In this document: positions 2,014 to 33,429 of the stretch, one piece after another
Position numbering within the stretch: position 1 is the first letter of the stretch
Layout: each line of letters opens with the position of its first letter
Sequence record: MK250019.1
Length of the DNA: 64,000 nucleotides
Direction: 5' to 3' (one strand)
Made by a program: the position numbers and the translations under genes
Notes under the pieces: model-generated
The model's database searches: none
What the model saw: the letters and a program-made list of their open reading frames with translations, nothing else
What the model was told of the DNA's origin: nothing

Positions 2014-2035
2014 TNNNNNNNNNNNNNNNNNNNNN

Positions 2036-3958: not shown

Positions 3959-4894
3959 TTATAAATTAAATTGATCTTTAATTCTATCCCATTTTCTATG
4001 TAATATATCTGTACATTGTATAGCATAATTATATAACTTAATAACATCATTTTTTCTAGAAAAATATGCTTGTATACAATTATGATTATCTATACGTAAA
4101 TGAAAATTAATATTATAATACTAATTAATAAGATTAAATAATTCAATATATAAAGATTTCCAACTTATATGATTACTTATTGATATTGATATACTATTTC
4201 TCGATTTAGAAATACATCCATCACCATCTAGAAATCCTATTAAAAAATATATTAAATATACTTTATCATAGAATATTGAAATATCTGGAGGATTATATGT
4301 TTTCTACTTATTTATGAGATTAAAAGTTTTTAACCATTTTTCACAAAATGATTTATCTCCTATACGTATATAACAATTCATATATTTCCCAAAAGTAGAA
4401 TTTGCTTCATGTTCTCTAACATTTGTATTTAATTTATCTGCTAATAACTATAAATTATGTTTATCTTTATTAGAAAGAGATATAATAAATTCATTTCTTG
4501 CAGATATACAACCGTCAGCCATAAAAAATCCCCACCAATAATAGACTTCTTTATTATTTAAATTATTCATAAAATTTAAATTACCATGTCTACGACGATT
4601 TATATTATGTGAAAATTTCATTCGTTCACACGCTTGAAACTAAATAGCATTATAACTAAGATTTGGAAATGCATCTAATAATTCCTATTTAGATGCATTA
4701 TACCATAAATCTCTTAATTTTTCATTATTTTCATTAGTCCACTTAAAATTACAATGTATTTGTAATTCATGAGCTTTCTTTTTAATTGCACTTTTTGTTC
4801 TATTTGGTAATAATTTAATACATTCAGTTAATCCTGATATAGGATAATACTACTTTAATATATTAATTTCATTATCAGTCCAAAAATTATACAT
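3959..4894 (-). mobile_element. Free-standing double-motif LAGLIDADG homing endonuclease (311 aa, TAG=Gln)
   Basis: WGFFMADGCIS and IGFLDGDGCIS motifs; 936 nt open apart from at least 5 TAG codons. Confidence 0.85.
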
Positions 4895-4912
4895 AGAAAA
4901 TTAATATTAATT

Positions 4913-6493
4913 TTAGATTGTGCCATCAAGAAGTTTATGAACTGCATCTTGACGTGTTTTACGAATTTCTGCAAGTGTAAACTCTTTTACAAGCTTACCG
5001 TCTTCAAACACCGTCTTCAATTCATTCTTATCTGATGCTTCATCTTCAATAGAAACTCGATCAATAGGTTTATAATTACCATTTTCATCCTTTACAACCA
5101 TAATAAGACCACGATGTGATTTCTTTGGTGTACCAGTAACAGTCTTTGGATCTTTAAAAATTTCAATAGATTTCCCATTTACAGAGCACCATGTTGCCTT
5201 ACATGCAAATGCTAATTGATCTCTAGTATTCATTTGAAAAGAAAATGATCCAATTCCCAAAATCAAATTAGTAGCAGCAAACATCTTATCTTCAAGTTGT
5301 GCATAAATCATTCTTTGACGTTTCATATTGATAGAATCACCATAAAGAAGTCCAATATGTGTATCAAGTACTTTATATCCCTTCTTATTAAATGTTCCAC
5401 CAAATATATTCCAAAGAAATTCATATGAACCCATCTTTACAAATTGATCATTTGCTTCTGAATCACCACAAATAATCTTTACAGGATCACCACTATCAGG
5501 ACGGATAACTACTCGACCATTTCGACTCATAATCTGTTCCTTATACTTAGGTACGATCTTTGTAATAAAATACCAATAATCATAGCCGTCTGCTACAATA
5601 GAAATAATACCATCAGGAAATTCATCAAGCATTCTCTTAAAATAAATTTCATCATCAGGAATACCAGAATCATTTGTTGCATTTGAACATTCCACTGAAT
5701 GTTCTGTTGCTGGTACTGTAGCTGCAATTAATTCTTTCTTAGGGTCTGCTTTATAATAGTACTCAATCATTTTAATTGCAGGTACCGATTCAGAACCACA
5801 AAATGATGTAAGATGTGCCATGCCTGAAGTGATTGTAGTTTCAAGAGAACTCATACCTCTCATTGAAAAATCATGACACAAAAAATCAAGGTTAGACAAA
5901 TCATTAGGATTATAAAAACCTGTTTTCATTGCATGTCTAACAAGTTCACGTCTATAAACATCTGAAATTGTAGCGGATGTCATTGGTTGCCACAAAATAT
6001 TTGAAAGAATAGACTCCAAATAATTAGTAAGCCAAGCAAAATCAGGATGTGTGTTTGTGATTGTCAAAACAGGACATCCGATTGGACAATATGAACCTTC
6101 AGGAAGTGCCTTAATTCTAATAGGGAGATAACCAAGCTTATGCAAAGCAATAATATGATCTACTCCTACTTTCTTTGCAACTGCTTCACCAAGAAATGAT
6201 GTAGTTAAATCAGTATATGTTTTTCTAACAGTATCTTCATCAAGGTTAAAGAAGAAATTATTAAACGTATTAATAAGATACTTCTTGATAAAATACTGAA
6301 TACCAAATACAACTACACCTTCATTTGCCTCTGGGAGGTACTTATTTCCTCGTGGTGTAAAATTACTAAAAAGTTGTGTCATTCCCTTAGGATACATACA
6401 GTGATGACCAAGCTTGTAGCCATCAGTCATAAGCATTGCATTGAGAAGTATGTCTTCTACCATTACATGCTGAGAATCTTTTACGTTTGTCAT
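4913..6493 (-). CDS. nadV: Nicotinamide phosphoribosyltransferase (NAMPT)
   Basis: TDGYKLGH, HDFSMRG, PATEHSV, VIRPDSGDP, LLYGDSI. Confidence 0.95.
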   Translation of the reverse strand: MTNVKDSQHVMVEDILLNAMLMTDGYKLGHHCMYPKGMTQLFSNFTPRGNKYLPEANEGVVVFGIQYFIKKYLINTFNNFFFNLDEDTVRKTYTDLTTSFLGEAVAKKVGVDHIIALHKLGYLPIRIKALPEGSYCPIGCPVLTITNTHPDFAWLTNYLESILSNILWQPMTSATISDVYRRELVRHAMKTGFYNPNDLSNLDFLCHDFSMRGMSSLETTITSGMAHLTSFCGSESVPAIKMIEYYYKADPKKELIAATVPATEHSVECSNATNDSGIPDDEIYFKRMLDEFPDGIISIVADGYDYWYFITKIVPKYKEQIMSRNGRVVIRPDSGDPVKIICGDSEANDQFVKMGSYEFLWNIFGGTFNKKGYKVLDTHIGLLYGDSINMKRQRMIYAQLEDKMFAATNLILGIGSFSFQMNTRDQLAFACKATWCSVNGKSIEIFKDPKTVTGTPKKSHRGLIMVVKDENGNYKPIDRVSIEDEASDKNELKTVFEDGKLVKEFTLAEIRKTRQDAVHKLLDGTI

Positions 6494-8154: not shown

Positions 8155-8223
8155 TATTTTATTCTAAATAAAAAAGAGAGATACTAAAATATAAAGTATC
8201 TCTCTTAAAATTATTATTAATTA

Positions 8224-9240
8224 TTACATGATATATTGTAAAAGCATTCTTGTTTCTTCATCTTGCCCGAGTTTTTTATTAGCCTCTCTCAAAATCTAAT
8301 TAACTCGTGTTTCTGTCATATTGTTTTCTTCTGCAATTTGCCAGGTATTTTTCTCTGGACGACCATTAATAGCGTAGCATGCACAAACAATTTCACCATT
8401 TCTTTTACCCATAACTCTCTTGATATTATCTTCAAGTTCTCTTGTTATATCTTCATTTTCAAGGTTACTTCCAGGCTCATTGAAAACATTATTTGTTGTC
8501 ATATCACCTAATGTTACTTTAGAATCTCCATCATCTCCAACAGATTGATCTAAACTATTTGCACGAGCATTTGCTTTCATCGTCTATACAAATGAATCAT
8601 AAGTTAAATTAGGGTGTTTCTTAACTAATACATCATAAATATCATCAATATCAGGTTCATAACCATTCTTATTAAATAAACGTTCTTTTACACGAGCAGC
8701 TTCACGAGCAATACTACCCATATTACGAGGAACTGCCATATGACCACCTACTTCATCAACTGCCATCATAATCTCTCGACGAATATACCAAATAGCATAT
8801 GATACAAATTTTACATCTTTTTCTGGTGTACTTGGATCATATGTTTCAGCTGCTTTCATAAGTCCAATATTACCATATTGAATTAAATCTTCTTTAGGAA
8901 TATTAAGATTTTTATACTTATTAACAACAGTAACAACAAACGGAAGATTTGCAGAAACTAATTTATTTTTTGCTGCCTCTACCTATCTCTTATTTGACGA
9001 ATGCTGAATAATATCTGCAAGTTTGCATTCATCTTCATGTGTTAATCTTTGTTTCTTATTAATTGCTTTTAAATATGCTACAAATGATTTTGCTGTATTT
9101 TCATCCTATGTAATAGTAAAATCATCATGTAAATCCATATGCATTCCATTATTATCTTCATTAAGAGTATTTCGTAATGAACGAGAAATACCTTCCATAA
9201 GGCTATTATACAATGCTTTCTTTTTATTAATTACTCTCAT
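8224..9240 (-). CDS. RNA polymerase sigma-70 family factor (338 aa, 4 TAG=Gln)
   Basis: Region 1.2 YLKAINKKQRLTHEDE; region 2 LVSANLPFVVTVV..DLIQYGNIGLMKAAETYD..KFVSYAIWYIRREI; region 4 HTH TWQIAEENNMTETRVN(Q)I. TAGs at 9106, 8983, 8584, 8296. Confidence 0.9.
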
Positions 9241-9331
9241 ATTTTATTTAATAAATTAATTTCAATAATTTATTATATTTATCAATATATAAAAATAGAG
9301 AATAGTTATCCCAACTATTCTCTATTATAAT

Positions 9332-9892
9332 TTAGTTATCCTGTACAATATTTAATATATGTTTAATCTTTTCTATATCATTATCTGTTATCCCTGTATA
9401 ATTATCAATGTGCACAAAATTATTCATTTGTTTGTCTAACATATCTTTATCATCATCTACAATACAATACTCTATATTTAAATTATCACTATTAAAAAAT
9501 TTTATATCATATAATGCAATATTATATGTTTGTGCACTTTTATCTAATACAATCGTTAAAAAATCATCTATTTCTTTTCCACGTGGTATATTATCTAAAT
9601 TTATATAATTTGGTGTTATTCCGACCATATATTTGTTTAAGGGTTTTAAATCTTTATATCGTTCAAATTCATGTTTTGTTGCTTCTAATGTAAATATTCT
9701 CCAAGATGATGATATAACTAATCTTACATTATACTTTTCACAAAGTTCTTTTATTTTAAAAACTGCTTTTTTATCGATAAAAATATCTCCTCCATTTTTT
9801 ATATATTCTTTTCCTTTATCATTTTCTGTACACCATATTGCATATTCTTCGGAATTTAAAACACCATCTATATCTAAAAATAAAAGTTTCAT
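9332..9892 (-). CDS. HAD-family protein (Swiss-Army-knife RNA-repair type)
   Basis: LFLDIDGVLNS, VISSSWR, YCIVDDD. Confidence 0.8.
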   Translation of the reverse strand: MKLLFLDIDGVLNSEEYAIWCTENDKGKEYIKNGGDIFIDKKAVFKIKELCEKYNVRLVISSSWRIFTLEATKHEFERYKDLKPLNKYMVGITPNYINLDNIPRGKEIDDFLTIVLDKSAQTYNIALYDIKFFNSDNLNIEYCIVDDDKDMLDKQMNNFVHIDNYTGITDNDIEKIKHILNIVQDN

Positions 9893-9916
9893 AATTTACA
9901 ATATATCTTATTTCAT

Positions 9917-10243
9917 TTAATCATCATCAAAATTATCATATATAGAAATTTTATTCTTTTTTCGTTCTTTCTGCTTTTCAATACACGGGAAACAGTATTC
10001 ACCAATACCTTTTATATATTTTTCATTTGTATATGTTGGTTCACCTTTAAAATTAAAATTTCGTTGTTCACCGTATGCAATATGTTTCTTCTTTTTCCAT
10101 TTAACAACTTTATCATGTTGTACTTCAATATCTCGAAGCTCTTTATATTTATTTTTTATTTTATATTTTTTATCGCCTTCTATAACAAAACTAGATGAAC
10201 CTTTTTTACTAATTTTATGTGACTGATGATAACTTCTAGACAT
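9917..10243 (-). CDS. Basic hypothetical protein
   Basis: 108-aa ORF within an operon. Confidence 0.65.
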   Translation of the reverse strand: MSRSYHQSHKISKKGSSSFVIEGDKKYKIKNKYKELRDIEVQHDKVVKWKKKKHIAYGEQRNFNFKGEPTYTNEKYIKGIGEYCFPCIEKQKERKKNKISIYDNFDDD

Positions 10244-10541
10244 CTTTTATATTATATATTTTATTTTTAAAATGTTTTAAAAAATCTTGATATTGCTCAT
10301 AATTTAATTCAATAAAATCATATTTTAATTTAAAATCAGTATTATTATTTGATAAACCATAATAAGAATCTGGTTGTTTATACAAAATCTGTTTATTGTA
10401 ATAAATTTTATATGTATCGTACATACGATTTGAATAACCAGTAGGCTTATATATTTCGACAGAAATAATACTACTTATCGGTATAATTTTACCATCTGAT
10501 GTACTAATATAATCATATTTTTTCTTTAATTTTATTGACAT
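10236..10541 (-). CDS. Hypothetical protein; ends at TAG, or 7 aa later at TAA 10215
   Basis: 101-aa ORF overlapping the next start. Confidence 0.65.
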   Translation of the reverse strand: MSIKLKKKYDYISTSDGKIIPISSIISVEIYKPTGYSNRMYDTYKIYYNKQILYKQPDSYYGLSNNNTDFKLKYDFIELNYEQYQDFLKHFKNKIYNIKDV

Positions 10542-10551
10542 ATTTTTTTAA

Positions 10552-10953
10552 TTAATATTCATCATCTATTTCATCACATAAATCTAAAAATTCCTCCTGT
10601 ATTGCATTATCCAAAATTTGAAATTCTCTGCGTTCGTTATATTCGTCTTCTGATTTAATCGCATCTGCCCAATCTGCATCAATATCATATACTTTTCTTG
10701 TATCTGTTGACATAACACGAATCATATTATGAATTTCTTTTTGCTTTCTGAATCCATAATCAGAAATATATCGTTCTACAAGAATTTCTTTTTTAAATAT
10801 AGGAATAATACAAATGAGTTTCGTATTCATTTCATCTTTCTCACATGAATGAATACCAGGAATCAACAATACAGACTTACCTGTTTCTACATTTATATTA
10901 TATGATGTATTACTGCGAAGAAATACAAGATCACCAATTTTAAATTCTGCCAT
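10552..10953 (-). CDS. Hypothetical protein
   Basis: 133-aa ORF after a promoter box. Confidence 0.7.
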   Translation of the reverse strand: MAEFKIGDLVFLRSNTSYNINVETGKSVLLIPGIHSCEKDEMNTKLICIIPIFKKEILVERYISDYGFRKQKEIHNMIRVMSTDTRKVYDIDADWADAIKSEDEYNERREFQILDNAIQEEFLDLCDEIDDEY

Positions 10954-10993
10954 AATTTTAATATCTTATTAATATTGTTTATTATTTACAATA

Positions 10994-11003
10994 CAAAGAT
11001 ACA
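10994..11003 (-). promoter_or_regulatory. TGTATCTTTG -7 box
   Basis: About 40 nt upstream of the ATG at 10953. Confidence 0.75.
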
Positions 11004-11107
11004 CATATTATTTGAATTAAAAAAATAAAAAAAGAAAAATCTTAATATATTATTTCTATAATAAGAATATATATATTAAGATTTAACGTTTTAAGCCTAT
11101 GAAATAG

Positions 11108-11208
11108 TAGATGTAGGGAGACTTGAACTCCCAAATTCCATACCTAGAATACCATGAAATAAACTCAAAATATTATTGAGTTGCGTTTACCCATTTCGCC
11201 ATACATCT
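11108..11208 (-). tRNA. Class II (Leu/Ser-like) tRNA-like gene with an abnormal 9-nt anticodon loop and 30-nt variable arm
   Basis: Acceptor AGATGTA/TACATCT; D arm GCGAAATGGGTAAACGC; T arm GGGAG-TTCAAGT-CTCCC; anticodon stem ACTCA/TGAGT around ATAATATTT. Confidence 0.65.
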
Positions 11209-11420
11209 ATAAAAAGGTAGTTTCTTATCCGAATGCAGTCTAACTACCAAACCTTGAGTATCACATTTCGTACGTTTCCCAGATATTGTGACATCTGCTT
11301 ACTATATTACTATAATAAGTTAATCCTTGAATCACTTAAACCTAATTTAATAGGGATACATGTCAATCCATGATTAAAAAGTCTTTAGCTTAACAATATT
11401 AAAAAATATCGCAAGGATTG

Positions 11421-11492
11421 CAGCCCTAATAAGATTCGAACTTATAACATCACAATTAAATATTATGTGCTCTACCATTGAGCTATAGGGCC
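11421..11492 (-). tRNA. tRNA-Lys(TTT)-like gene with A instead of U at position 33
   Basis: GGCCCTA/TAGGGCT; GCTC-AATGGTA-GAGC; CATAA-TATTTAA-TTGTG; ATAAG-TTCGAAT-CTTAT. Confidence 0.7.
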
Positions 11493-11579
11493 AAGGTCTT
11501 ATTTTAAATTTCCACGCAATAAGACCTTAGATTTTTGTAGATATGTGTTCATAGTACTTAAACTAATGCTTGTAAATAT

Positions 11580-11671
11580 ACTGACGTGTTAACCACTTCA
11601 CCAATCGCCCATATATATTGTTTTTTGCTTTAATTGAGGGCAATACGGGAATCGAACCCGTGTTGGTCAGT
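11580..11671 (-). tRNA. Candidate circularly permuted tRNA gene (3' half 11671-11637, 26-nt linker, 5' half 11610-11580)
   Basis: The halves complement each other in the acceptor (GGGCGAT/ATTGCCC) and anticodon (TCAGT/ACTGA) stems; canonical D and T arms. Confidence 0.7.
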
Positions 11672-11871
11672 AAAATTCATGATGTATCACGAATGAACTA
11701 TGACAATCTAACATTTACTGTAATACTAAAGCTCTTGACTCAATGCTAATGCTAAAATCTAGGATTTTGTTTATGCTAAATGTAATCAAGCTAATGCTTT
11801 AGTCAATTTACATTATTTATATATCAAACAATATACAAAGTCTATTTTTATTCTTAAAATAATTTCACTTA

Positions 11872-11879
11872 AATAAATA
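11872..11879 (+). promoter_or_regulatory. T4-late-like promoter AATAAATA
   Basis: About 30 nt upstream of the ATG at 11908. Confidence 0.45.
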
Positions 11880-11907
11880 TCATAAATGAAATAGTTATCG
11901 TAACTAA

Positions 11908-13125
11908 ATGAAAAAGAATAATTATCTATATGAAGAAATGATACAGGATATTTCTGTTATCGTTAAACATCGAATAAATGAAGCATATGATAATCAACTT
12001 CTTGAAGAATATGGTGCAAAAGATATATTTAATGATGTAATGAAAGAAGCTACAAAAGATGGAAAAATCTTTTATACACATCTTAAAAAATTTATTATTT
12101 ATGTTATCAAAAAACTTCAAGAAACAAATCAATATAAGCAAGCAGAAAAAATGATGAATGCATATGTTCAGAAAATATAGAAATATATAAATGAACATAA
12201 AAAGATTACACCTCGTCGTATGTTAAAAATTACAGTTACTGTATTAGCAATATATGGCGGTGTATCAATGGTATAGGATTGTAAATCACTAATAAAATCA
12301 CTACAAAATAATGTAGAAACATATGAGCAAACAGCAGAAGATATTCCAGATTTACAATAGGAAAATATTACTGTTGATGAACCAGAAAATTTTGTAGTCA
12401 ATGTAAAGGATGAAGCAAAATAGACATTAAGTGTTAAACATGTTTCATAGGAAGATATTAATAATTCTCCTGCAAATAAATTCGAACATGATAAGAATTT
12501 CAATTTTAAATCAAGTAACAGTGCACGTGAATTTATTAAAAAACATGAAATGCTTCTACTTTATCCTTATTATGCAAATGAAGCTGAAGAAAAACAAGGT
12601 AAAGTAACTATAGGTTATGGACATGTTGTATTAGAAACTGATGGTGCATTATATCAGCAAATACAACAATTAAAAAAGAAAGGTCTTATAAAGCAGTCAT
12701 TTACTCGTGATAAGAAAACAGGAAAACTTATATTAAATCCTAAACATTGTAAACCAATTATTACAAAAGTGCAAGCAAATAAATTATTCTTAAAAGATAT
12801 TAAGATAGCAGAAGATAGAGCATATAAAGCATTGCAAGATATGCCTACTGATGATGATAATGTTAAGTGCTATATGTTATATAATCAAAAAATAAGAGAT
12901 GGATTAACATCACTATGTTATAATGCTGGTAATCTTAAACATGATAAGTATTCATTTATAACAAAAGGACTTGCAAAATGTAGATATGATTATAAAAACC
13001 AGAAAATTAATCCAGGTGATTATAATGTATCATTCAGTTATTTTAAAAATATTAAAGATAATCCTAATAGAAGAAATGAAGAATATAAGTTATTCTTTAT
13101 GAATGCAAATAAATCAATGTCATAA
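11908..13125 (+). CDS. Lysozyme (GH24-like) fusion with N-terminal leader and hydrophobic segment (405 aa, 5 TAG)
   Basis: C-terminal REFIKKHE...TIGYGH...LTSLCYNAG...RRNEEYKLF; 1218 nt in frame. Confidence 0.8.
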
Positions 13126-16588: not shown

Positions 16589-18484
16589 TTAAGAGAAATC
16601 ACCACCGGTATCACCTCCACCAGTATCTGCAATTTCAGAACCACCAGATCCCATACCAGTATCACCACCAGAGAATGCTTCATCACCGCCAGAGAAGTCT
16701 CCTCCTCCACCGAAGTCACCTCCACCAGTATCACCTCCAGCGCCGAATGAATCATCAAATCCTGAACCTCCAGAATCACCACCGAAATCCATTTCGCCTG
16801 GTGCACCGTTACCTTGCTGCTCACCAACTTGCTTACCTATTTCTTGATGTTGTTTAATTGTTTTGGCTTGCTCTAATCGTTCAATAATTTCGCCTTGCTT
16901 ATATTTTTCATTAAGTGCAAAATCTTCATCAGACATACCTAGAAATTTCTCAATAAGGAATTTCATACTAAAGAATGGTTTATTTTCACCTAATTGAATT
17001 TGTGCTAAAGTACCTATAATTTCAGCACCCTATTTTAATGCTGTTCTTTCTTTTGCTTTAACAAATAAGTTTTCCTCATTGAATACAATACCTATACATT
17101 GTTTAAGCAATTCAGAATTAGCTAATTCTGGCATCATTAAACATATTTGCACCCATAAAGGTTTTAACAAAATTTCACGATACATAACGCGAATACGACT
17201 AATAAATCTACTAAATGCATATTCCTCTCGTGTTATACTTGCATCATCTCCACCTAATGGATGTGCGCCATCAGCAGCAGGATCAATCATAAATCTATTT
17301 GCTGGAACTTTTGTTTCTAATATAAAACGTCTCCAGAAATATTTCAATGGTGTAATATCACTTAAGTCATAACCTTCTGTAGGTATTTCTTCTATTGTCA
17401 TCGAATTACCATCACGAATTGGGAAAAAATGAGTTTTAGAAAATGAAAAACGTGGTTGACCATTTACAACCATTTCACCAGATATTTCATCGACTGTTGT
17501 TTCTTCATTCCAATCTGCTTTTACTTCATTAACCTTTGCACGAGCTTTGTCCTATGAAATATTACCTACAGGAATACCCACTTTAACACGTTTCTGTGAA
17601 TTCATAATATTCCAAACCATTCTTGATGTTTCAAGTTGTGTTAACATTGTATATGATCTGATTAATCCTTCTAGATAAGAAACTCGTGAATTTTCGCCAT
17701 ACATACCTGTTGACCATGATATATATACAATATTCGAATCTGGTATTTTTCTTTCCAACTATGCATCACCTCTATATTGATACCATACTTTTACTTCTTT
17801 TCCTGTTTCTGGATCTATTTCAATATCAGGTTCAAGAGTTGCTGCATCCAATTCTCTCATGCCTATAATACGTGTAGGTTTCATAAGATTATCAACAACA
17901 ATTTCAAATGCCAAATATCCTTCAACTAAGAATTTTTTAAAATAATTCCATGCATCATTTGATTTATCCCATCCATATGTAGAATATATAATCTTAAATG
18001 CTTTTTGACAATTTTTAATTAAATCATCTGCAGTTTCACCATTTGCACCTTTATAATTAGTGTTAAACTTTAATTTCAGAAGATTTAAATCTAACTATGC
18101 AAAATAATTGTTTTCATCTAATATTATAGTTTCATCTGAAATAGTATCAAGAACAAAAGAAATTGTTTGTTGTGAAGCGAACTATCTTAACTATTCACGT
18201 CTCTATTGATATGATAAATCATAATATGCATAAGATTGTTTTGTATTTTTAGTAATATCAACATACTATGAAAAAGAATTTTGATCCTAATTTAAACCAT
18301 CGTTAAATGGATATAATGAATCACCTGTATAATTATTTGTTTGAGCGGAACCTAAAGCTAATGATGTTTTAAGAATACTCTATGATGAATTTAAACTGAG
18401 AGAAGACAGATTAATAAGTGTATTGATTTTATTATGATCTGCTTTTCCTGGATTAAACTTTCTTGCTATATATTTTGTAGGCAT
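16589..18484 (-). CDS. T4 gp20-like portal protein (631 aa, TAG=Gln) with Gly/Asp-rich tail
   Basis: RVSYLEGLIRSYTML, KRVKVGIPVGNIS(Q)DKA, FFPIRDG..IEEIP, LKYFWRRFILETKVPANRF, ITREEYAFSRFISRIR follow the gp20 pattern; 1896 nt in frame. Confidence 0.85.
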
Positions 18485-18605
18485 TATTATGCTTTTATTT
18501 AGTTTTTATATTTATTATATATAAAAATAGGTAATATGTTTATGAAAAATACATATTACCTATCAAACAAAATTAAACAATTAAATATATATATTATGAA
18601 AAATG

Positions 18606-18997
18606 TGGAGACATCCGGAGTCGAACCGGAGTATTACTAACTTGTCAATAATAAACTATCTACGTGCGTATTTCTTAATTAGTTTTCATCATACATTCTT
18701 AGGAGTTAAACAGTTTAATGTCTTAATCACTCTTATTGGACAAAAAGTATAGTGAGTTTTATTTAACAGAGAAAACACTCACCGAACTCCGTGGCGATGC
18801 TCAACTTACCTTGTAAGGAGCAAATGCTTCAATGGGTTTATATTACCAATCCTACCGGATTAAGCTGCCATACGAAAATCAATTTCGTCGTCATTTAAAT
18901 TTATTTGCTAAATTTCTTTGTATTACTACAAAAGGCTTTTAACTTTCCTACACGATTTATTATCACATAATTAATAAGCAAAACCAAAAATGTCCCC
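18606..18997 (-). ncRNA. ssrA: tmRNA (one-piece), tag about (A)DDEIDFRMAA*
   Basis: GGGGACA/TGTCTCC acceptor with G3.U70; T arm CCGG-TTCGACT-CCGG; internal GAC GAC GAA ATT GAT TTT CGT ATG GCA GCT TAA. Confidence 0.9.
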
Positions 18998-19041
18998 TAA
19001 ATATTAATTACATATTTTATATATGTAATTAATTAAAAAGT

Positions 19042-19353
19042 TTACTTTTTCTTTAACTTTTTACCTGTTTTATAATAACGCTGTAACTTATTATTTAATA
19101 CAGTATTTATCTCATTAAGTCTATGATTTTCACTAATTATACTATTATATTTTTTATATAAGGTGTTATATGATATATTAAAATCTTTAATCGTTTTATC
19201 ATATGCATGAGTTAAATCTTCGTGTATTCTAATCATGTCATCTTTGTTTTTTATTATTGATTTAAATATATCTTCTTTTTCCTTTATACTATTTGGCATA
19301 AGAATAGCACTTAATATATTTGTAAAATAATCAGATAATTTCATAATTAACAT
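19042..19353 (-). CDS. Hypothetical coiled-coil protein
   Basis: 103-aa ORF. Confidence 0.65.
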   Translation of the reverse strand: MLIMKLSDYFTNILSAILMPNSIKEKEDIFKSIIKNKDDMIRIHEDLTHAYDKTIKDFNISYNTLYKKYNSIISENHRLNEINTVLNNKLQRYYKTGKKLKKK

Positions 19354-19363
19354 TCTTATTATA

Positions 19364-20167
19364 TTAAACGAATATAGTTAATTCCATATTTTGTGACATT
19401 AAATTTCCAAATACATTCATAGGAAGTGTTTTTGAAAATGTATCATTAACATACAAATCAATATAATTTGCATAACATGATGACTTATTCAATTTATTTT
19501 TTCCTTTCTCTAGAACTGTAATTCTACCATACACAATATCACCTTCTTTAACATCACTTAAATAATTTGTTTTGATATGAATTCGTTTAACAATATATTT
19601 CGGTGTTGCTAAATAAATATCTCCATTGTTTGGAGCATTATCAATTGCATCCCATTTTGCCTTTCTTCTTGCTGCATTTTTTTGTTGTCTCTTATTGTAT
19701 TCAGCAATAGCATCTTCTTCGGTTTCAAAACAACGATTTCTTACATTAGTATGTGGTACATCACACACAGAAAGAAGATAATATCCCTCTCTAATTTTAT
19801 AATTATCATCTGCTTCTCTTACAAAACATACAGACCATTTATCTGCAGAAGAATATCTTATAATTTCTGAAGCACCTCTAACTGCAGGTGAAATTTCTTT
19901 ATTAAGCTTTACAAATACAATACGTCTACTATCTTTTGATATAGGATCTACTGTATATAATGATTTACATTCATTATCTAATACTTCTTTCTTGATAAGA
20001 AATCCATAAATAGTTCTACTAAAACTAAAATAGTATGATGATCTCCCACTTTCTTCATAATTACCAAGATATAAATCTGTATTATCAATATAATATTCAT
20101 CAGGAATATTTGATAATGATTTATTATGGTCATATGAATTTATAAATGTATATGATTTTGCTTTCAT
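19364..20167 (-). CDS. Hypothetical protein
   Basis: 267-aa TAG-free ORF after a promoter box. Confidence 0.75.
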   Translation of the reverse strand: MKAKSYTFINSYDHNKSLSNIPDEYYIDNTDLYLGNYEESGRSSYYFSFSRTIYGFLIKKEVLDNECKSLYTVDPISKDSRRIVFVKLNKEISPAVRGASEIIRYSSADKWSVCFVREADDNYKIREGYYLLSVCDVPHTNVRNRCFETEEDAIAEYNKRQQKNAARRKAKWDAIDNAPNNGDIYLATPKYIVKRIHIKTNYLSDVKEGDIVYGRITVLEKGKNKLNKSSCYANYIDLYVNDTFSKTLPMNVFGNLMSQNMELTIFV

Positions 20168-20199
20168 AATTTCTATTTTTCTTTCATTAATTTATATCT

Positions 20200-20209
20200 C
20201 AAAGATACA
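20200..20209 (-). promoter_or_regulatory. TGTATCTTTG -7 box
   Basis: 33 nt upstream of the ATG at 20167. Confidence 0.75.
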
Positions 20210-20276
20210 TAAAAGTTTTTAAAATAAAAAATGGAGACTATATGAATAATCTCCATTTAATGTATAATATCATTTT

Positions 20277-20495
20277 TTAACAATCTTCTACATTTGTAAT
20301 AGATACCTTATTTAATTCATCTTGCCAATTAATAACAAACTGTAAATTAAATAAATTATCTTCTACTAATTTCATATTATTAAGTCTCTTAACTTCATTA
20401 TATAATGTAATTGCTTCTTTTACATTATTCTCCATTCTAATTGCTAAATCTGCAATTTCTGTGTATTCTTGCTTTAATATATCTTCTTTAATCAT
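20277..20495 (-). CDS. Hypothetical protein
   Basis: 72-aa ORF. Confidence 0.6.
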   Translation of the reverse strand: MIKEDILKQEYTEIADLAIRMENNVKEAITLYNEVKRLNNMKLVEDNLFNLQFVINWQDELNKVSITNVEDC

Positions 20496-20546
20496 TTAAA
20501 TTCTCTCACAATTTTTTTGATCGAAAAAGACAAAATATTATGTTGT

Positions 20547-20828
20547 TTAATTATCAGAGATATAATGTTTAAACCCATTCTGTAATTTTGTTAACATATG
20601 TTTAATCTTAACATCTCTAATTTCTGAATTTTTAATTACATTATATTGTCCTATTATAAGATCAATATAATTAGCAACAGCTTTAGCATCTAATTTATCA
20701 ATAACTGAATATAGATTTATCTCTGGTGTTTTTACTTTACTTTCATATAACTCACATTCTGTTTTATTAGTAAAAACTTTTCCATCATCTGCATAATATT
20801 CTGTCTTTATAATTGTCTTCTGTTTCAT
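20547..20828 (-). CDS. Hypothetical protein
   Basis: 93-aa ORF; YYADDGKVFTNKTECELYE. Confidence 0.7.
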   Translation of the reverse strand: MKQKTIIKTEYYADDGKVFTNKTECELYESKVKTPEINLYSVIDKLDAKAVANYIDLIIGQYNVIKNSEIRDVKIKHMLTKLQNGFKHYISDN

Positions 20829-20866
20829 AATTGTAAAAAATTAAAAATATTACTAATGTCATGTCG

Positions 20867-20938
20867 TTGGGGATCCGAGACTCGAACTCGGCCTAAGAGT
20901 TTTAGAGACTCCTGTACTGACCACTATACTAATCCCCA
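20867..20938 (-). tRNA. Amber-suppressor tRNA, anticodon CUA, Gln-type body
   Basis: TGGGGAT/ATCCCCA (U1-A72, G2-C71, G3-C70); GGAGT-CT CTA AA-ACTCT; CCGAG-TTCGAGT-CTCGG. Confidence 0.95.
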
Positions 20939-20968
20939 ATACTATATTTTAATTTACATAACTATTAA

Positions 20969-21739
20969 TTATTCTATATAATCGCTTAATTTCTATTTGT
21001 AATGATAATATGTTGATTTACATACATTATATTTAGTTAAAAAATCTGATTCTGATATATTATTTACAATATCATTCTTCATATCTACTGTTAATTTACT
21101 GCAACCATTAGAATTAAATAACTATATCTTCTCATTATATTTAGATATTTTCTACATTAATTCTTGTTTATCACGTGATAATATATATCGTTTTTTAACT
21201 AAAAGATTACTGACACTACCTCTTGTAAAATTAACATTCATATCACGTTTTAATTGTTGTAATGATGTAGATGAAACAATATTCTTTGTATTTACATCAT
21301 AACAATATATTGTATGCCTTCCATCATTCTATTTTTCATATGATTTTTTCTAAACTATTAATTTCTATTCATCTGTGAATTTATATCCATCAATACCACC
21401 ATCACCACCTTTTGTTTGATTATAACCAGTAGCTCCATAACTATTATATTTACGAATATACTATTTTTCTAATAGATCTAATTGTTGTTTTATATCAGAC
21501 GTGATATAATTATCAAATGTTTTTAATATATATAATGAAAAGGAATCTATACCATATTTCTTAAATGCTTTATATATTGGCGCATTATATCTATTATTAA
21601 CAGAATTATTAATATGATGTAATAATCTTTTATGTAGATTTATACTCTAACCAATATAACACTTTTTATTTATATCATTCTAAATCATATAAATACCCGG
21701 ACACTATGGTATATTATTTATAATATCATCTTTACTCAT
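20969..21739 (-). mobile_element. GIY-YIG (Seg-like) homing endonuclease (256 aa, many TAG)
   Basis: GIYMI(TAG)NDINKKCYIG(TAG)S and GYNQTKGGDGG; 771 nt in frame. Confidence 0.9.
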
Positions 21740-21771
21740 AATAATTTTTAATATTTAATAACCATATTTTG

Positions 21772-21845
21772 TAGCCCCACTCAGATTCGAACTGAGTCAG
21801 CGAAAGTTAGAGTTTCGAATACTTAAACCATTACATCATAGGGCA
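21772..21845 (-). tRNA. Second amber-suppressor tRNA, anticodon CUA, Gln-type body
   Basis: TGCCCTA/TGGGGCT (1:72 mismatch); CGAAA-CT CTA AC-TTTCG; CTCAG-TTCGAAT-CTGAG. Confidence 0.93.
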
Positions 21846-21860
21846 ATAAAAATATAAAAA

Positions 21861-22211
21861 TTAAATATAATCTTTTCGTCCTGTTCCCGTTTCAGGATTC
21901 CATTTATAATATTCTTTTGGTAAAGTACCTTTACATGTATCAATTAATTTATAATCAGAAATATCAAATCCAAATTTTTGTATATATGTAATATCTGGTT
22001 TATTTATACCCCATAAATAATAACCTTTTGAATTTTGAAATACATAATAAGTCCAAGTATTATCTATTTCTTCTTCGACTTTTACTTTCTTTTCTGTTTC
22101 ATCAAATTCACGTAAAATTTCAATGTCATTTTCTGTAATCTTCATTCTCTTTAATTTCTTCGGAAGATTATTTGTATAACATTTTTGACCTTTATATAAA
22201 AATTCAATCAT
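21861..22211 (-). CDS. Hypothetical protein
   Basis: 116-aa ORF. Confidence 0.7.
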   Translation of the reverse strand: MIEFLYKGQKCYTNNLPKKLKRMKITENDIEILREFDETEKKVKVEEEIDNTWTYYVFQNSKGYYLWGINKPDITYIQKFGFDISDYKLIDTCKGTLPKEYYKWNPETGTGRKDYI

Positions 22212-22363
22212 TTAATATTCATATATATTTTATGAAAAAATGCGTTAAAAGTTTTAAATATTCTTAATTATTTTTAAATATTTTTAACTAAGTAATATAA
22301 AATATTTTTTGCATTTAACATATATTATAACATGAAATATTAATAATGTCTAAAATATTTTTA

Positions 22364-22840
22364 TTATTTTATTTTTTTAATTAACTTTTCTGATTTATCA
22401 TATAGAGATTCTGTTTCACTAATCATTTTCATATATTTAGATTTAAATTCATCTGTAGATAATTCAATTATAGTAAGATTAAGAAACTCATTTAAATTAT
22501 ATGATAATTGTTTATGTGCATCAAATTCAAACCATATATCATCAAGATATGATGAATCATTATATTTAAAAGACAATCCATTTAAATATACTCTTGTATC
22601 ATGCTTATCACACGTTACAAATTGTTCATATACATGAATATAAACAGCATTATTATATGAACGTTCTTTTGATATACGAACATATTTACCTCTCAAATCT
22701 CGTTGGGAAATAAGTAATTCATTTTTTAATGTTTTATATTCATATGCTTTTTCATATGTTTCATTCTCTAATTTCTGAAGATATTCTATATTTCCTGTTA
22801 TATCTGGTTTATGTAGAATATTTTGTAATTGTTTATTCAT
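22364..22840 (-). CDS. Hypothetical protein
   Basis: 158-aa ORF overlapping the upstream stop. Confidence 0.7.
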   Translation of the reverse strand: MNKQLQNILHKPDITGNIEYLQKLENETYEKAYEYKTLKNELLISQRDLRGKYVRISKERSYNNAVYIHVYEQFVTCDKHDTRVYLNGLSFKYNDSSYLDDIWFEFDAHKQLSYNLNEFLNLTIIELSTDEFKSKYMKMISETESLYDKSEKLIKKIK

Positions 22841-23924
22841 ACTTAATTATTTCATATAAATTTCTATTGTTATAGTTATTAATAAAATTGTCACAATCTT
22901 TCTGTGTAATATTATTAATTGGTATAAATATATCATTTTTGCGATATATTAATTGCATTGATTCTGGTATTCCTAAACTTTTCTCTAATGCTTTCTTCTT
23001 TTTTTGTTCTTTAATATATAAGTCTAATTCTTTTTCTGTTTTGATATTTTTCATGGGAAAAGGATAACGACATAATTTTTTTTCTTCTTCTAAATAATCG
23101 TCACCATTATATATTTCAAAATTATCCGCTTTAGACCATATTCTGATATTTGATTTATTAAACGGTAATAGCTTATTATCAATACAATAATCAATAAATG
23201 TTTTAATATTAGCTGGATAATATAATTCAGGTAATTTATATCTTTTATATCTATTATCTTTATTATCATTTAAACAATATAAACGTTTAGTTTTTTGAAG
23301 TTCAACTATTGTATTTCCCTTTAATAAATCTTTATTAATCTTTAATATAGGAATTGACATAAAAATAACTTGGTCATCTTCCCAGGCAACATTATATCCG
23401 TTTTGTTTTTCTAATTCTTCATCAGCTTCATTAGAATTCATAACATATGAATGTTCCTTCCATAATATTCTGGATTGCCTACAATATACTTGAAATACAC
23501 CAAAATCTAATTTAATAATTCTGAATGTATATGGACCATTATTAGGTCTATTTGCTATTTCTTTATTATATTGTTTTATTACTTGTATATATTCCTTATA
23601 TTTTAAAGAATTAATTGTATTTTGTATCGCAAAATATCCTATATTAACTTTGCTTAATTGTGGACAATCTTTAACGAATTTTTGTATATCGAATAAACGG
23701 TCCAAATCCCATGAATAACTATTATCTTTCCACTCAGCTTCAAAATTATTTTGTTTTAAGTTATCATATATATCTTTACGAATATCATTTTTAAATTTTG
23801 TACAATAATCTTTAATTGTATGACAACTCCAATATTTTTTAATTGTGGTAATTTGTTTTTGAGATGGATGCTTTTTTATCACCCATCTCAACCATTCATT
23901 TATATCTATAATTTTATTATCCAT
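22833..23924 (-). CDS. Hypothetical protein
   Basis: 363-aa TAG-free ORF. Confidence 0.75.
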   Translation of the reverse strand: MDNKIIDINEWLRWVIKKHPSQKQITTIKKYWSCHTIKDYCTKFKNDIRKDIYDNLKQNNFEAEWKDNSYSWDLDRLFDIQKFVKDCPQLSKVNIGYFAIQNTINSLKYKEYIQVIKQYNKEIANRPNNGPYTFRIIKLDFGVFQVYCRQSRILWKEHSYVMNSNEADEELEKQNGYNVAWEDDQVIFMSIPILKINKDLLKGNTIVELQKTKRLYCLNDNKDNRYKRYKLPELYYPANIKTFIDYCIDNKLLPFNKSNIRIWSKADNFEIYNGDDYLEEEKKLCRYPFPMKNIKTEKELDLYIKEQKKKKALEKSLGIPESMQLIYRKNDIFIPINNITQKDCDNFINNYNNRNLYEIIKYE

Positions 23925-23928
23925 ATAA

Positions 23929-25644
23929 TCAATTCAAACCTGTTACTTTTCCATCTACAAAATCAATATGCTTAGCTGCTGGTTCTTTAGGTAATCCTGG
24001 CATACGCATCATATTTCCTGCAATAACAACAAAAAATTCTGCACCATTATTAATCTTTATTTCATCTATATTAAATATTGTATTATTATTTACAGATGGA
24101 ATAACCTTAGGATTATCAGAGAATGAATATTGTGTTTTTGCCATGCAAATAGGATATTCATAAATTTCATTAATAAATTCATCTTCATGATTTTCATATG
24201 TTCTATCAAATCTTGAAATAAATTTTAATGCATCTTTTGAATATCTTATATTATCTGGATTAATACCATATACATTTTTACATAGATCCGCAATTTTTTC
24301 CTTCATACTATCTAATGTATGATATGCAAAAATAGGTAACATTGGTTTCCTATTATTGTCTACAATATCAACAACCTCTTTTGCAAGATCAATAGCACCA
24401 TCACTGCCATTTAAATAACTTGTATTCTTAATACATTTTACATTTCTACATGTACAGAAATTCTCAAGAATACGCTGTTCATTATTTGTATCAGTATCAA
24501 ATACATTATTTGTTACAACAATTCTTACACCAAATTTCTTAATATTTGTAATATGTTGTTCAAGATTCTTTAATCCAATTTCAAGTGATTTAATATCTTC
24601 TTTAGATAGATCTGTACATCCACCTTGATTTTTCAATCCTGGAATTGTCGCAACTAATACTACAACATCTGGACATAAACCATTCTTTCTACATTTAATA
24701 TCTATAAATTTCTCTGCACCAAGATCTGAACCAAATCCTGCTTCAGTAACCACATAATCACATAATGATAAACCCATACGTGTCGCAATAACAGAATTAC
24801 AACCATGAGCAATATTAGCAAATGGTCCACCATGAACAATAACAGGATTATTATCCAAACTTTGAACAAGATTTGGTTTAATTGCATCTGATAGTAAAGC
24901 AACAATAGAACCTGTTATACCTAATTCACTGCAGAACATAAAACTACCATCTATACGTTCTGCAATAATAATCTTATTGATACGTCTGCGAAGATCATCA
25001 ATATCACGTGCCATACAGAAAACTGCCATTAATTCAGAAGCGGGTGTAATATCAAATCCTGTTTGAATTAATTTACCATATTTCTGTGTTGTATATATTG
25101 TTCGAAGAGAACGATCATTAATATCTAAACAACGTCTAAATGTAATATTTTTAATTTTTGATTCTTCTTCTAGATTCTGATAAAAATAATTATCAATAGC
25201 AGCTGCAATCATATTATTTGCAGTTGTTATAGCATGAAAATCTCCTGTAAAATGTAAATTAATTTTATCCATAGGAACAATCTGTGAATAACCACCACCA
25301 CATGCACCTCCTTTCATTCCGAAACAAGGTCCTAATGATGGTTCGCGTAACACCGCGATTGAATTTTTCTTGAGTTTTCGAAGTGCATCATTCAATCCAA
25401 TACTTACAGTTGTTTTACCAATACCAGATTTAGTAGGACTAATAGAAGTAACAAGAATAAGATGTTTATCTGTATAACTTGTATACGGTTTCATTAATTC
25501 CAAAGGAATCTTTCCCATATACTTTCCATACATTTCAATATTTCCATTTGATGGTATATTACCTGTAGGAAATAATTTATTAAAAACACAATCAATACTT
25601 TGCATAGATGCTTCTTGAGCAATCTGAATATCTGATTTCATCAT
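23929..25644 (-). CDS. fhs: Formate--tetrahydrofolate ligase
   Basis: MKSDIQIAQ, GIGKTT, REPSLGPCFGMKGGACGGG, INLHFTGDFHAIT, HGGPFANIAHG, MRMPGLP. Confidence 0.97.
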   Translation of the reverse strand: MMKSDIQIAQEASMQSIDCVFNKLFPTGNIPSNGNIEMYGKYMGKIPLELMKPYTSYTDKHLILVTSISPTKSGIGKTTVSIGLNDALRKLKKNSIAVLREPSLGPCFGMKGGACGGGYSQIVPMDKINLHFTGDFHAITTANNMIAAAIDNYFYQNLEEESKIKNITFRRCLDINDRSLRTIYTTQKYGKLIQTGFDITPASELMAVFCMARDIDDLRRRINKIIIAERIDGSFMFCSELGITGSIVALLSDAIKPNLVQSLDNNPVIVHGGPFANIAHGCNSVIATRMGLSLCDYVVTEAGFGSDLGAEKFIDIKCRKNGLCPDVVVLVATIPGLKNQGGCTDLSKEDIKSLEIGLKNLEQHITNIKKFGVRIVVTNNVFDTDTNNEQRILENFCTCRNVKCIKNTSYLNGSDGAIDLAKEVVDIVDNNRKPMLPIFAYHTLDSMKEKIADLCKNVYGINPDNIRYSKDALKFISRFDRTYENHEDEFINEIYEYPICMAKTQYSFSDNPKVIPSVNNNTIFNIDEIKINNGAEFFVVIAGNMMRMPGLPKEPAAKHIDFVDGKVTGLN

Positions 25645-31341: not shown

Positions 31342-33312
31342 TTAGACCTCTTCGTATTCTGCTTCCTGAACGTTATCATCTGTCTTTGAATTCTCAGATG
31401 TTGAATTATTTGCAGTTGCATCACCAAAACCTGCATTTGCAAACATATCGTTAGGGTTTTGTGCAGAATTTTCCTGAGGTTGAGAACCACCAGCATTCTT
31501 ATACATTTCCTCAACAATTGGCTTAAATACTGTCTCAAGTTCTACACGTGCAGATTCTGCTGCAACAGCATCCTTCTTAGAAACTGCATCAAGTACTGCA
31601 CTAATCTTTGTCTTCAATGTATCTTTCTTATCAGAAGGAATTGATGAACCTGTCTTCTCATCATCCATATACTTCTGAACCTGAGTTGCATACTGCTCTG
31701 CACCATTCAACTTATCAACTTCATCCTTCTTCTTCTTATCTGCTTCTGCAAACTTCTCTGCATCTGCCTTAATACGTGCAATCTCTTCATCTGAAAGTGC
31801 ATTAGGAGACTGAATTGTTACCTTCTGCTCTTTATTTGTACCCTTATCTGTTGCTGTTACTTCAAGAATACCATCTGCATTAATATCAAATGTTACTTCA
31901 ATCTGAGGAACACCCTTTGGTGCAGGTGCAATACCCTCCAAATTAAAATTACCAATTACCTTATTATCTGCAGACATTGGACGCTCACCCTGAAGAACCT
32001 TAATTGTTACTGCAGGCTGATTATCTACTGCTGTAGTAAATACCTGTGACTTACGTGTAGGAATAGTTGTATTTGCATCAATCAACTTTGCCATCTCACA
32101 ACCATTTACCTCAATACCCAATGAAATTGGTGTTACATCAAGAAGAAGAACTGAATCTTCTGTTGCATTACCAGCAAGTGTATTTGCCTGAATTGCAGCA
32201 CCAAGGGCAACAGCCTCATCAAAATTACAAGTCTTATTCAATGGCTTGTTAAATGACTTCTCCAATGCAGACTGAACTGAAGGAATACGAGAAGAACCAC
32301 CAACCAAAAGAATCTCACTAATCTGATCTTCTGTAATACCAGCCTTCTCTACTGCACGATGCGCAATATCAACAACCTTATTTGTCAAATCTTCAGTAAG
32401 TCTCTCAAATGTTGCACGATTAAGTGTCTTCATCAACATCTGTGGAACACCATCAGCAACAGTAATATAAGGAAGATTAATCTCTGTCTGAGTAGCAGTA
32501 GACAACTCACACTTTGCTTTCTCTGCTGCTTCTACAAGACGAGCATATGCCATCTTATCCTTACTCAAATCAATACCTGTATCGTTCTTAAACTCATCAA
32601 TAAGCCACTGAACAATAGCATTATCATAATTCTGTCCTCCAAGGAATACATCACCATCTGATGCAAGAACCTCAATCATACCATCAGAAATCTCTACAAT
32701 GGATACATCTTCTGTACCACAACCAAGGTCATTTACAAGAACAATCTTGTCACCATTTTTTGTATCAATATTAGAAGAAAGAACTGCTGCAGTAGGTTCA
32801 TTAATAATACGAAGTACATTCAAACCTGCCAACTGTCCAGCTACCTTAGTAGCATTACGCTGAATATCATTAAACCAAGCAGGAACAGTAATTACAGCAT
32901 CTTTACAATCATCTGTTCCATAATATCCCTTTGCAACTTCATACATATTCTTAAGAATCATAGATGAAATTTGCTCAGGTGAATATGTTTTATCGTCAAT
33001 CTTTAGACGAGGATTTCCATTTTCATCGACAACATCATATGTTACCATCTTCAACATTTTCTGTACATCTGTATCATCCCATTTTGCACCCATAAAACGT
33101 TTTACAAATGAAATGGTATTTTTTGGATTCATTACCATACCACGCTTTGCAGCTGCACCAATTTTTGTTTCATCACCTTTAATGTACACTACTGATGGCG
33201 TTGTCTTATAACCATCTGCATTTTCAATTACTTTAGCTTTGTTTGCCTCGATGATGGCTACCGCACTGTTTCCAGTACCTAGGTCCAAACCAATAACTTT
33301 CTTGTTGCTCAT
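31342..33312 (-). CDS. dnaK: Chaperone DnaK/Hsp70
   Basis: GLDLGTGNS, AVITVPAWFND, INEPTAA, LLVGGSSRIP, DINADGIL. Confidence 0.97.
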   Translation of the reverse strand: MSNKKVIGLDLGTGNSAVAIIEANKAKVIENADGYKTTPSVVYIKGDETKIGAAAKRGMVMNPKNTISFVKRFMGAKWDDTDVQKMLKMVTYDVVDENGNPRLKIDDKTYSPEQISSMILKNMYEVAKGYYGTDDCKDAVITVPAWFNDIQRNATKVAGQLAGLNVLRIINEPTAAVLSSNIDTKNGDKIVLVNDLGCGTEDVSIVEISDGMIEVLASDGDVFLGGQNYDNAIVQWLIDEFKNDTGIDLSKDKMAYARLVEAAEKAKCELSTATQTEINLPYITVADGVPQMLMKTLNRATFERLTEDLTNKVVDIAHRAVEKAGITEDQISEILLVGGSSRIPSVQSALEKSFNKPLNKTCNFDEAVALGAAIQANTLAGNATEDSVLLLDVTPISLGIEVNGCEMAKLIDANTTIPTRKSQVFTTAVDNQPAVTIKVLQGERPMSADNKVIGNFNLEGIAPAPKGVPQIEVTFDINADGILEVTATDKGTNKEQKVTIQSPNALSDEEIARIKADAEKFAEADKKKKDEVDKLNGAEQYATQVQKYMDDEKTGSSIPSDKKDTLKTKISAVLDAVSKKDAVAAESARVELETVFKPIVEEMYKNAGGSQPQENSAQNPNDMFANAGFGDATANNSTSENSKTDDNVQEAEYEEV

Positions 33313-33429
33313 AATTTTATTATGTATTTAATTTTTGTTGCTCAATAACTTCATATGTTAAACATACGGAGTTATTGTATAAATTTATTATTTAATTATT
33401 TTATATTCTATCTATTTATAGAGAAAAAA

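Follow-up and report, generated by a model that had tools for sequence, protein, structure and literature searches.

In the 541-kb gut megaphage Prevotella phage Lak-A2 (MK250019.1, 541,299 bp), the only two tRNA genes with a CUA anticodon, inferred to read the stop codon TAG as glutamine, flank an intact GIY-YIG homing-nuclease gene that itself requires TAG read-through, and comparison with sister phages suggests that the nuclease moves between genomes together with one of the two tRNAs, a possible route by which the ability to change the genetic code spreads. The stretch analysed (the window, 64,000 nucleotides) corresponds to record positions 124001-188000, except for 73 masked N at 2015-2087, and positions 18500-23000 of the window are 100% identical to Lak-A2. 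It is established that Lak megaphages read TAG as glutamine (Devoto et al., 2019; PMC6784885), and in the window late genes such as the T4-like portal (16589-18484) and the plus-strand block from 49040 are full of in-frame TAGs, while many minus-strand genes have none. The features of the locus are the following:

21861..22211, minus strand: upstream neighbour of 116 aa without TAG; its Lak-B counterpart (136 aa) ends exactly at the left edge of the allele swap described below.
21771..21845, minus strand: tRNA(CUA) #2, a putative amber suppressor with a host-type (Bacteroidales tRNA-Gln) acceptor stem and D arm, a U1.U72 mismatch and an A10-U25 pair, 31 nt upstream of the nuclease start codon.
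20969..21739, minus strand: free-standing GIY-YIG homing-endonuclease gene of 256 aa, with 10 in-frame TAG codons (codons 12, 20, 31, 93, 125, 130, 137, 196, 206 and 249) and a TAA stop.
20942..20959, minus strand: 18-nt leader ATGTAAATTAAAATATAG just 5' of tRNA(CUA) #1.
20867..20938, minus strand: tRNA(CUA) #1, a Lak-specific putative amber suppressor resembling the phage's own tRNA-Gln(CUG), with U1-A72, G2-C71, G3-C70, G10 and A73, starting 30 nt after the nuclease stop codon.
20547..20828, minus strand: downstream neighbour of 93 aa without TAG; homology between the two Lak-B alleles resumes about 13 nt after the tRNA, just upstream of this gene.

The observation from which this analysis started, that two distinct CUA tRNAs bracket an amber-dependent GIY-YIG gene on one strand, was confirmed, with the correction that the gene carries 10 in-frame TAGs and not about 11 (the Lak-A1 copy has 11); both tRNAs had already been listed in Table S2 of Devoto et al. 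(2019). ARAGORN places the tRNAs at 20866-20938 and 21771-21845, and a whole-genome ARAGORN scan finds no other CUA tRNA in Lak-A2, although a tRNA(UUA) elsewhere in the genome could also read UAG. The Rfam tRNA model scores tRNA#1 at 60.5 bits but does not report tRNA#2 even at E<=1; the latter, however, was called by tRNAscan-SE at 41.2 bits in the published table. On an alignment of 22 members of the tRNA#2 family the cloverleaf is paired in 97.4% of cells, against 40-48% for slid controls, and the covariation score is 0.52 against 0.19 in shuffles (0 of 500 reach it), the Lak-A copies keeping the stems by compensatory changes, with double changes in the D, anticodon and T stems. Among six Lak-A-type genomes only 3 of the 75 positions of tRNA#2 vary (two in the variable loop and one G-C to G-U change), while tRNA#1 is invariant.

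The two tRNAs are 59% identical, which means that, as had been claimed, they are not copies of each other. tRNA#1 is closest to the phage's own tRNA-Gln(CUG) (74%). tRNA#2, in contrast, belongs to a widespread family whose first 18 nt occur in more than 113 IMG/VR contigs, about half of them as tRNA-Gln(UUG) and half as tRNA(CUA), and also in chromosomal tRNA-Gln of Bacteroidales and Prevotellaceae, with which it shares its acceptor strand and D arm. When compared with the identity elements of E. coli GlnRS (weak 1:72 pair, G2-C71, G3-C70, G10, U35), tRNA#1 has all of them, whereas tRNA#2 has U1.U72, G2-C71 and U35, but C3-G70 (as in Bacteroidales tRNA-Gln) and A10. The U1.U72 mismatch is typical of this family: position 1:72 is U.U or U.G in 12 of 14 suppressors but U-A in 8 of 8 tRNA-Gln (p 1.4e-4, without phylogenetic correction). 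GlnRS opens this pair, and it can be inferred that a weak pair could favour glutaminylation.

The nuclease gene contains no TAA or TGA inside, and its product matches Pfam GIY-YIG (PF01541) over residues 14-107 at E 1.3e-9 (38.6 bits, cut-off 22.6), PHROG homing-endonuclease families over residues 15-249 at E 5e-21, and the catalytic domain of I-TevI (PDB 1mk0) at E 0.005. The residues Y17 (GIY), Y28 (YIG), R38, H41/H42, E91 and N106 are present at I-TevI spacing; the Glu-to-Asn distance of 15 matches I-TevI E75-N90, although the phmmer local alignment is shifted by 4 at the Glu, so this residue is placed by spacing and motif. The longer C-terminal part is presumably DNA-binding, as in I-TevI, but Pfam finds no DNA-binding family in residues 110-256; in contrast to I-TevI, the Lak gene does not lie inside an intron. 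The gene is single-copy and under purifying selection, with a dN/dS of 0.23 against the Lak-B5 orthologue (dS 0.78) and of 0.07 within Lak-A. Five TAGs are conserved and three are swapped with CAA between Lak-A2 and Lak-B5, and a TAG sits at the 'YIGQ' position of the family, both of which support glutamine as the residue inserted. With 3.9 TAG per 100 codons, representing 62% of its Gln codons, it has the highest TAG density of 59 ORFs in the window, while three genes downstream and five upstream have none. Without suppression it would stop at codon 12, and four of its TAGs lie inside the catalytic domain.

The original prediction had named the comparison of this locus across related phages as a test of its interpretation, and this comparison was made. 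Lak-A1 (four records), Lak-C1 and three IMG/VR or ENA contigs share the order tRNA#2, nuclease, tRNA#1. Lak-B2, B4, B5, B7 and B8 have the nuclease followed by tRNA#1 only, and the nuclease starts 6 nt after the stop codon of the upstream gene. Lak-B1, B3, B6 and B9 have neither (in B3 the nuclease is absent from the whole genome), and at the same place they carry the orthologue of tRNA#2, interrupted in the anticodon loop by 245 nt. Across 15 complete Lak genomes and 7 further contigs the nuclease and tRNA#1 are present or absent together, but the linkage is not absolute. One contig (L238) has tRNA#1 without the nuclease, with the break at the nuclease stop codon; this contig joins three distant genome regions through a dispersed repeat, which may reflect either rearrangement or misassembly. 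In addition, the Lak-C1 copy of the nuclease carries a TGA at codon 87, before E91.

Lak-B3 and Lak-B5, compared whole, are 99.77% identical and 74% of their 500-bp pieces are identical, yet 877 bp (nuclease and tRNA#1) in one replace 406 bp (intron-split tRNA#2) in the other, between the stop codon of the upstream gene and about 13 nt past the tRNA. tRNA#1 and the split tRNA#2 share the 18-nt leader and a related trailer, so they occupy one orthologous 'suppressor slot'. The leader has no other exact copy in the Lak-A2 genome and is not a genome-wide promoter; a function as promoter or processing signal is inferred only, and a scan for sigma-70 promoters and terminators gave nothing above shuffles.

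In an alignment of 20.4 kb from all nine Lak-B genomes, five with the nuclease and four without, the differences fixed between the two alleles lie only in columns 8214-12162, that is, from 2.1 kb on the tRNA#1 side to 0.95 kb on the other side of the block. To the left of that tract B5 is identical to the intron genomes (0-3 differences) and far from the other nuclease genomes (47-76 differences), while to the right it is B2 that is identical to the intron genomes (0-2 differences). Inside the tract the five nuclease genomes are nearly the same, with 17 segregating sites in 3970 bp against 168 in 16447 bp (Fisher p 1.7e-4), a 2.4-fold drop in diversity. This pattern fits the spread of the nuclease tract onto different backgrounds with co-conversion of flanking markers, but does not prove it: extensive homologous recombination has been reported among exactly these nine baboon genomes (Devoto et al., 2019), other divergent patches exist between B3 and B5, all the genomes are metagenome consensus sequences that can be chimeric, and the four intron genomes are one near-clonal lineage that may have imported its tract once, so that the direction of transfer is unresolved.

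The insert in the alternative Lak-B allele (locus L002, 3886-4138 region) is probably a group I intron, a reading held with good confidence. It lies between nt 35 and 36 of the tRNA, with junctions CUCU / UUAAAUAGGAG...ACG / AAA, so that the 5' exon ends in a U that pairs with G in P1 (CUCU with GGAG) and the insert ends in G; its removal gives the loop CUCUAAA and a cloverleaf identical in form to that of intron-less relatives. P3 (AUUCCG/CGGAAU), P7 (GACUAU/AUAGUC), GAAA loops in P2 and P5, and R/S-like elements can be read by eye, while Rfam Intron_gpI gives a full-length alignment at only 15.7 bits and E 0.1, below the gathering score of 50. The MFE fold of the split tRNA is no better than shuffles (z 0.5), which is uninformative for a pseudoknotted ribozyme in AT-rich RNA, and since a search for RNA runs returned none, splicing and expression are inferred from sequence alone. 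Two other phage lineages carry inserts of about 1 kb with HNH ORFs at the identical site of tRNA(CUA) genes, with a covarying P3, and these were not found by Rfam. The reading of the split gene as Ser(CGA) by ARAGORN was rejected because it breaks group I splice rules and matches no family member. The intron, which standard tRNA finders miss or misread, explains why the published table shows no Sup-CTA for B1, B3, B6 and B9, and 30 rather than 31 tRNAs. Small ORF-less group I introns also occupy anticodon loops in bacteria (cyanobacterial tRNA-Leu(UAA), Azoarcus tRNA-Ile), whereas this one lies in a phage suppressor tRNA.

Outside the Lak phages, the nearest homologues of the nuclease (35-46% identity) are enzymes of crAss-like Suoliviridae, the closest being that of cr131_1 (45.5%). 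In cr131_1, cr114_1, cr109_1, cr6_1, cr4_1 and cr56_1 the gene starts 15-25 nt after a tRNA annotated as Gln whose anticodon is CUA; five of these loci are syntenic and cr131_1 is in another context, which together with Lak makes three contexts. The tRNA of cr131_1 has the tRNA#2 acceptor stem, including U.U. These crAss-like enzymes have no in-frame TAG, so amber dependence is not intrinsic to the module, and none of 46 other tRNA#2-family suppressor loci in IMG/VR has the nuclease within 1.5 kb, which led to rejecting the idea that the association is general to that tRNA family.

Taken together, these observations favour, by a modest margin, the proposal that the amber-suppressor ('code-switch') locus of a Lak megaphage is occupied by a SegB-like selfish element, formed by a free-standing GIY-YIG homing endonuclease gene joined to tRNA#1. 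What the sequences demonstrate is that both CUA tRNAs are real and distinct, with resemblances to tRNA-Gln, that the nuclease is intact, conserved, single-copy and translatable only if TAG is read through, and that nuclease and tRNA#1 behave as one presence/absence unit that alternates with another suppressor allele in near-identical genomes. The remainder, including cleavage, homing, and the expression, charging and suppressing activity of the tRNAs, is inferred. In this view, the tRNAs would be transcribed early in infection and charged with Gln by the host GlnRS, and only then would TAG-bearing genes, including the nuclease, be translated; in mixed infection with a Lak relative lacking the nuclease, the enzyme would cut in or beside the suppressor slot, and repair from the nuclease-bearing genome would copy in the nuclease, tRNA#1 and 1-2 kb of flank. 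Three kinds of tRNA would escape cutting, namely tRNA#1, the diverged intron-less tRNA#2 of Lak-A, and the intron-split tRNA#2 of Lak-B1/B3/B6/B9. No naive allele, with neither nuclease nor intron, was seen in any Lak genome.

The original interpretation, a self-mobilising code-switch cassette whose nuclease can be made only once its flanking suppressors act and whose homing would co-convert the suppressors into rival phage genomes, is partly supported. The amber dependence, the joint presence or absence of nuclease and tRNA#1, the co-segregation of SNPs within 1-2 kb of the block and the position of the homologues in crAss-like phages speak for it. However, the idea that the two tRNAs move as one bracket was rejected, because tRNA#2 is absent from the Lak-B nuclease allele and is the sole suppressor of the nuclease-less allele. 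Likewise, every recipient seen already uses TAG as Gln and has its own suppressor, so that this would be the replacement of one allele by another, and the conversion of standard-code rivals is not supported.

Other explanations have been considered, all of them less likely. The nuclease could be a resident, possibly domesticated gene that merely sits at the suppressor locus, the two Lak-B alleles having been shuffled by the general recombination described in this population and not by nuclease-made breaks. This possibility, unlikely but the strongest of the alternatives, is favoured by the reported admixture of the baboon genomes, by the many other divergent patches between B3 and B5, by the permanence of the gene at one locus under purifying selection since the Lak-A/Lak-B split, which is unusual for a purely selfish gene, and by the report that SegB itself serves the phage by amplifying tRNA genes (PMC13096335). 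It has to be reconciled, however, with a clean block whose breakpoints fall at gene edges, with the drop in diversity exactly round it, with its presence on intron-type backgrounds on opposite sides in two different genomes, and with the same nuclease family following tRNA(CUA) in unrelated phages.

It is also possible, although doubtful, that the invader is the other allele, that is, that the intron-split tRNA#2 tract entered the ancestor of Lak-B1/B3/B6/B9 once from an unsampled phage and displaced nuclease and tRNA#1, the intron protecting the tRNA gene from the GIY-YIG enzyme or from HNH enzymes, in which case the locus would be a battleground of two selfish elements for one target. The four intron genomes are nearly clonal over 16 kb (0-4 differences) and nest within nuclease-bearing diversity, their tract carries private alleles, including a 160-bp segment about 19% divergent, HNH-bearing introns occupy the identical site in other gut phages, and nuclease and intron are mutually exclusive in all Lak genomes. 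On the other hand, the Lak intron has no ORF and cannot home on its own, and this proposal does not explain the reduced diversity of the nuclease tract across backgrounds; it complements the favoured explanation more than it excludes it. The least likely alternative is that part of the assembly is decaying, with tRNA#2 of Lak-A2 a weak or dead copy or the nuclease inactive. The failure of Rfam to find tRNA#2, its U1.U72 mismatch, its A10 and two G-U pairs in the D stem, its absence from the Lak-B nuclease allele and the premature TGA of Lak-C1 point in this direction, but the compensatory changes in its stems, its restricted variation among six genomes, the frequency of U.U or U.G at 1:72 in its family and the dN/dS of 0.07 within Lak-A point against it.

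The closest precedent is SegB of phage T4, a GIY-YIG enzyme also encoded between tRNA genes on the same strand, which recognises a tRNA T-arm motif and drives the inheritance of its tRNA region (PMC2330249); related phages lack the gene and differ in the neighbouring tRNA genes, and segB homologues are enriched near tRNAs (PMC13096335). What is new in Lak-A2 is that the putative cargo belongs to the genome's only CUA suppressors, its code-changing parts, and that the gene itself needs that suppression. T4 and T6 SegB were not among the 40 best tblastn records obtained with the Lak enzyme, and cleavage and homing have been demonstrated for SegB, whereas for Lak they are inferred. A free-standing endonuclease and an ORF-less group I intron reportedly also concern the same short target in the cyanophage psbA / F-CphI system of collaborative homing, but there the two sit in one genome and cooperate, while in Lak they are mutually exclusive alleles, which suggests competition or protection.

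How phages acquire and spread a changed genetic code is an open question. Borges et al. (bioRxiv 10.1101/2021.08.26.457843) propose that the gain of a suppressor tRNA comes first, and could detect a suppressor in only about 40% of TAG-recoded genomes. The locus described here offers a candidate vehicle for the horizontal spread of suppressors, and a putative selfish gene whose translation would be gated by the tRNAs it carries. A more far-reaching and tentative proposal, which is on balance unlikely, is that the pair formed by tRNA(CUA) and this endonuclease is a cassette that moves between unrelated gut phage lineages (Lak megaphages and crAss-like Suoliviridae), delivering a ready-made amber suppressor and so seeding or maintaining TAG-to-Gln recoding, and that the suppressor gene is a contested target for which free-standing GIY-YIG genes and HNH-bearing group I introns compete; intron-split suppressors would also explain part of the 'missing' suppressor tRNAs in recoded phages.

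The richness in amber codons is not exclusive to this nuclease, since the two other homing-endonuclease genes of the window, a LAGLIDADG gene at 3959-4894 and a phrog_3339 enzyme at 41613-42851, are also TAG-rich islands among TAG-free genes. The logic of delayed translation had likewise been proposed by Borges et al. for an endonuclease of Agate phages, preferentially rich in the reassigned stop codon inside an early region and proposed to be held back until late infection; that endonuclease is TGA-recoded, intron-encoded and not linked to the suppressor tRNA, while in Lak-A2 the nuclease is physically joined to the suppressors.

The region around the suppressor locus of Lak-A2 also encodes other elements, all of them on the minus strand:

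window 18603-18997 (-), a phage-encoded tmRNA
window 3959-4894 (-), a free-standing homing-endonuclease gene of the LAGLIDADG type with 6 TAGs
window 41613-42851 (-), a free-standing homing-endonuclease gene of the phrog_3339/DUF7487 type with 10 TAGs
window 23929-25644, 4913-6493, 42854-43699 and 2909-3952 (all -), metabolic and repair genes without any TAG: formate-tetrahydrofolate ligase (Pfam E 2e-204), nicotinamide phosphoribosyltransferase, an RNA ligase and a polynucleotide-kinase-like protein

The tmRNA scores 58.2 bits with Rfam (gathering score 47), ARAGORN gives it the tag DDEIDFRMAA ending in UAA, and it is conserved in Lak-B at 47-48 bits; the main text of Devoto 2019 does not mention it. 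Each of the two homing-endonuclease genes is a TAG-rich island between TAG-free genes, and the second has about 10 paralogues in Lak-A2 and no orthologue beside the RNA ligase in Lak-B. A run of 73 N at window 2015-2087 is masked and was left unfilled; these positions differ from the public record.

The copy of the GIY-YIG gene in Lak-C1 (locus L004, Lak-C1 record 184639-185406) has TGA at codon 87, where the others have Leu, and this codon lies before the catalytic Glu, which represents either decay of the nuclease or a consensus error. In a Lak-A-like contig (L238, OIXA01000380.1, 2434-3349), tRNA(CUA) #1, the suppressor that lies downstream of the nuclease in Lak-A2, is present without the nuclease. 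Upstream in this contig are pieces from the 357-kb and 210-kb regions of Lak-A2, joined by a dispersed repeat of about 200 bp that is also present at Lak-A2 record 211911-212138 and 509885-510055, and at several places in Lak-B5.

The only tRNA(CUA) of Lak-B1, B3, B6 and B9 is split by a 245-nt insert, a probable group I intron, between nt 35 and 36 (locus L002, 3861-4173 (-), which corresponds to Lak-B3 record 410803-411120; also loci L231, L232, L233 and L239). ARAGORN misreads this gene as Ser(CGA), and the published tRNA tables list no CUA suppressor for these genomes. Other gut phage contigs (282 kb and 74 kb) carry inserts of about 1 kb with HNH-endonuclease ORFs at the same position of tRNA(CUA) genes, and each insert ends in G and has a P7/S-like element (contig loci L148, about 4342-5414 (-), and L235, about 4877-5966 (-); also L113 and L234). 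In addition, ARAGORN reports several other Lak tRNAs with inserts of 87-143 nt, for example at Lak-A2 record 33234-33393, 396968-397197, 409836-410022 and 417502-417666; these are the “enigmatic introns” of Devoto 2019.

In the alignment of the family of tRNA(CUA) #2, the suppressor upstream of the nuclease (alignment A3, column pair 1:74), position 1:72 is U.U or U.G in 12 of 14 CUA suppressors, but U-A in all 8 tRNA-Gln with the same body. This difference may be an adaptation to GlnRS after loss of the anticodon identity. Every Lak genome also has a tRNA with anticodon UUA (ochre type), although TAA is the main stop codon, and this tRNA could also read UAG by wobble; it is found at Lak-A2 record 211337-211409, outside the window, and at Lak-B3 record 343746-343818 and 199749-199823.
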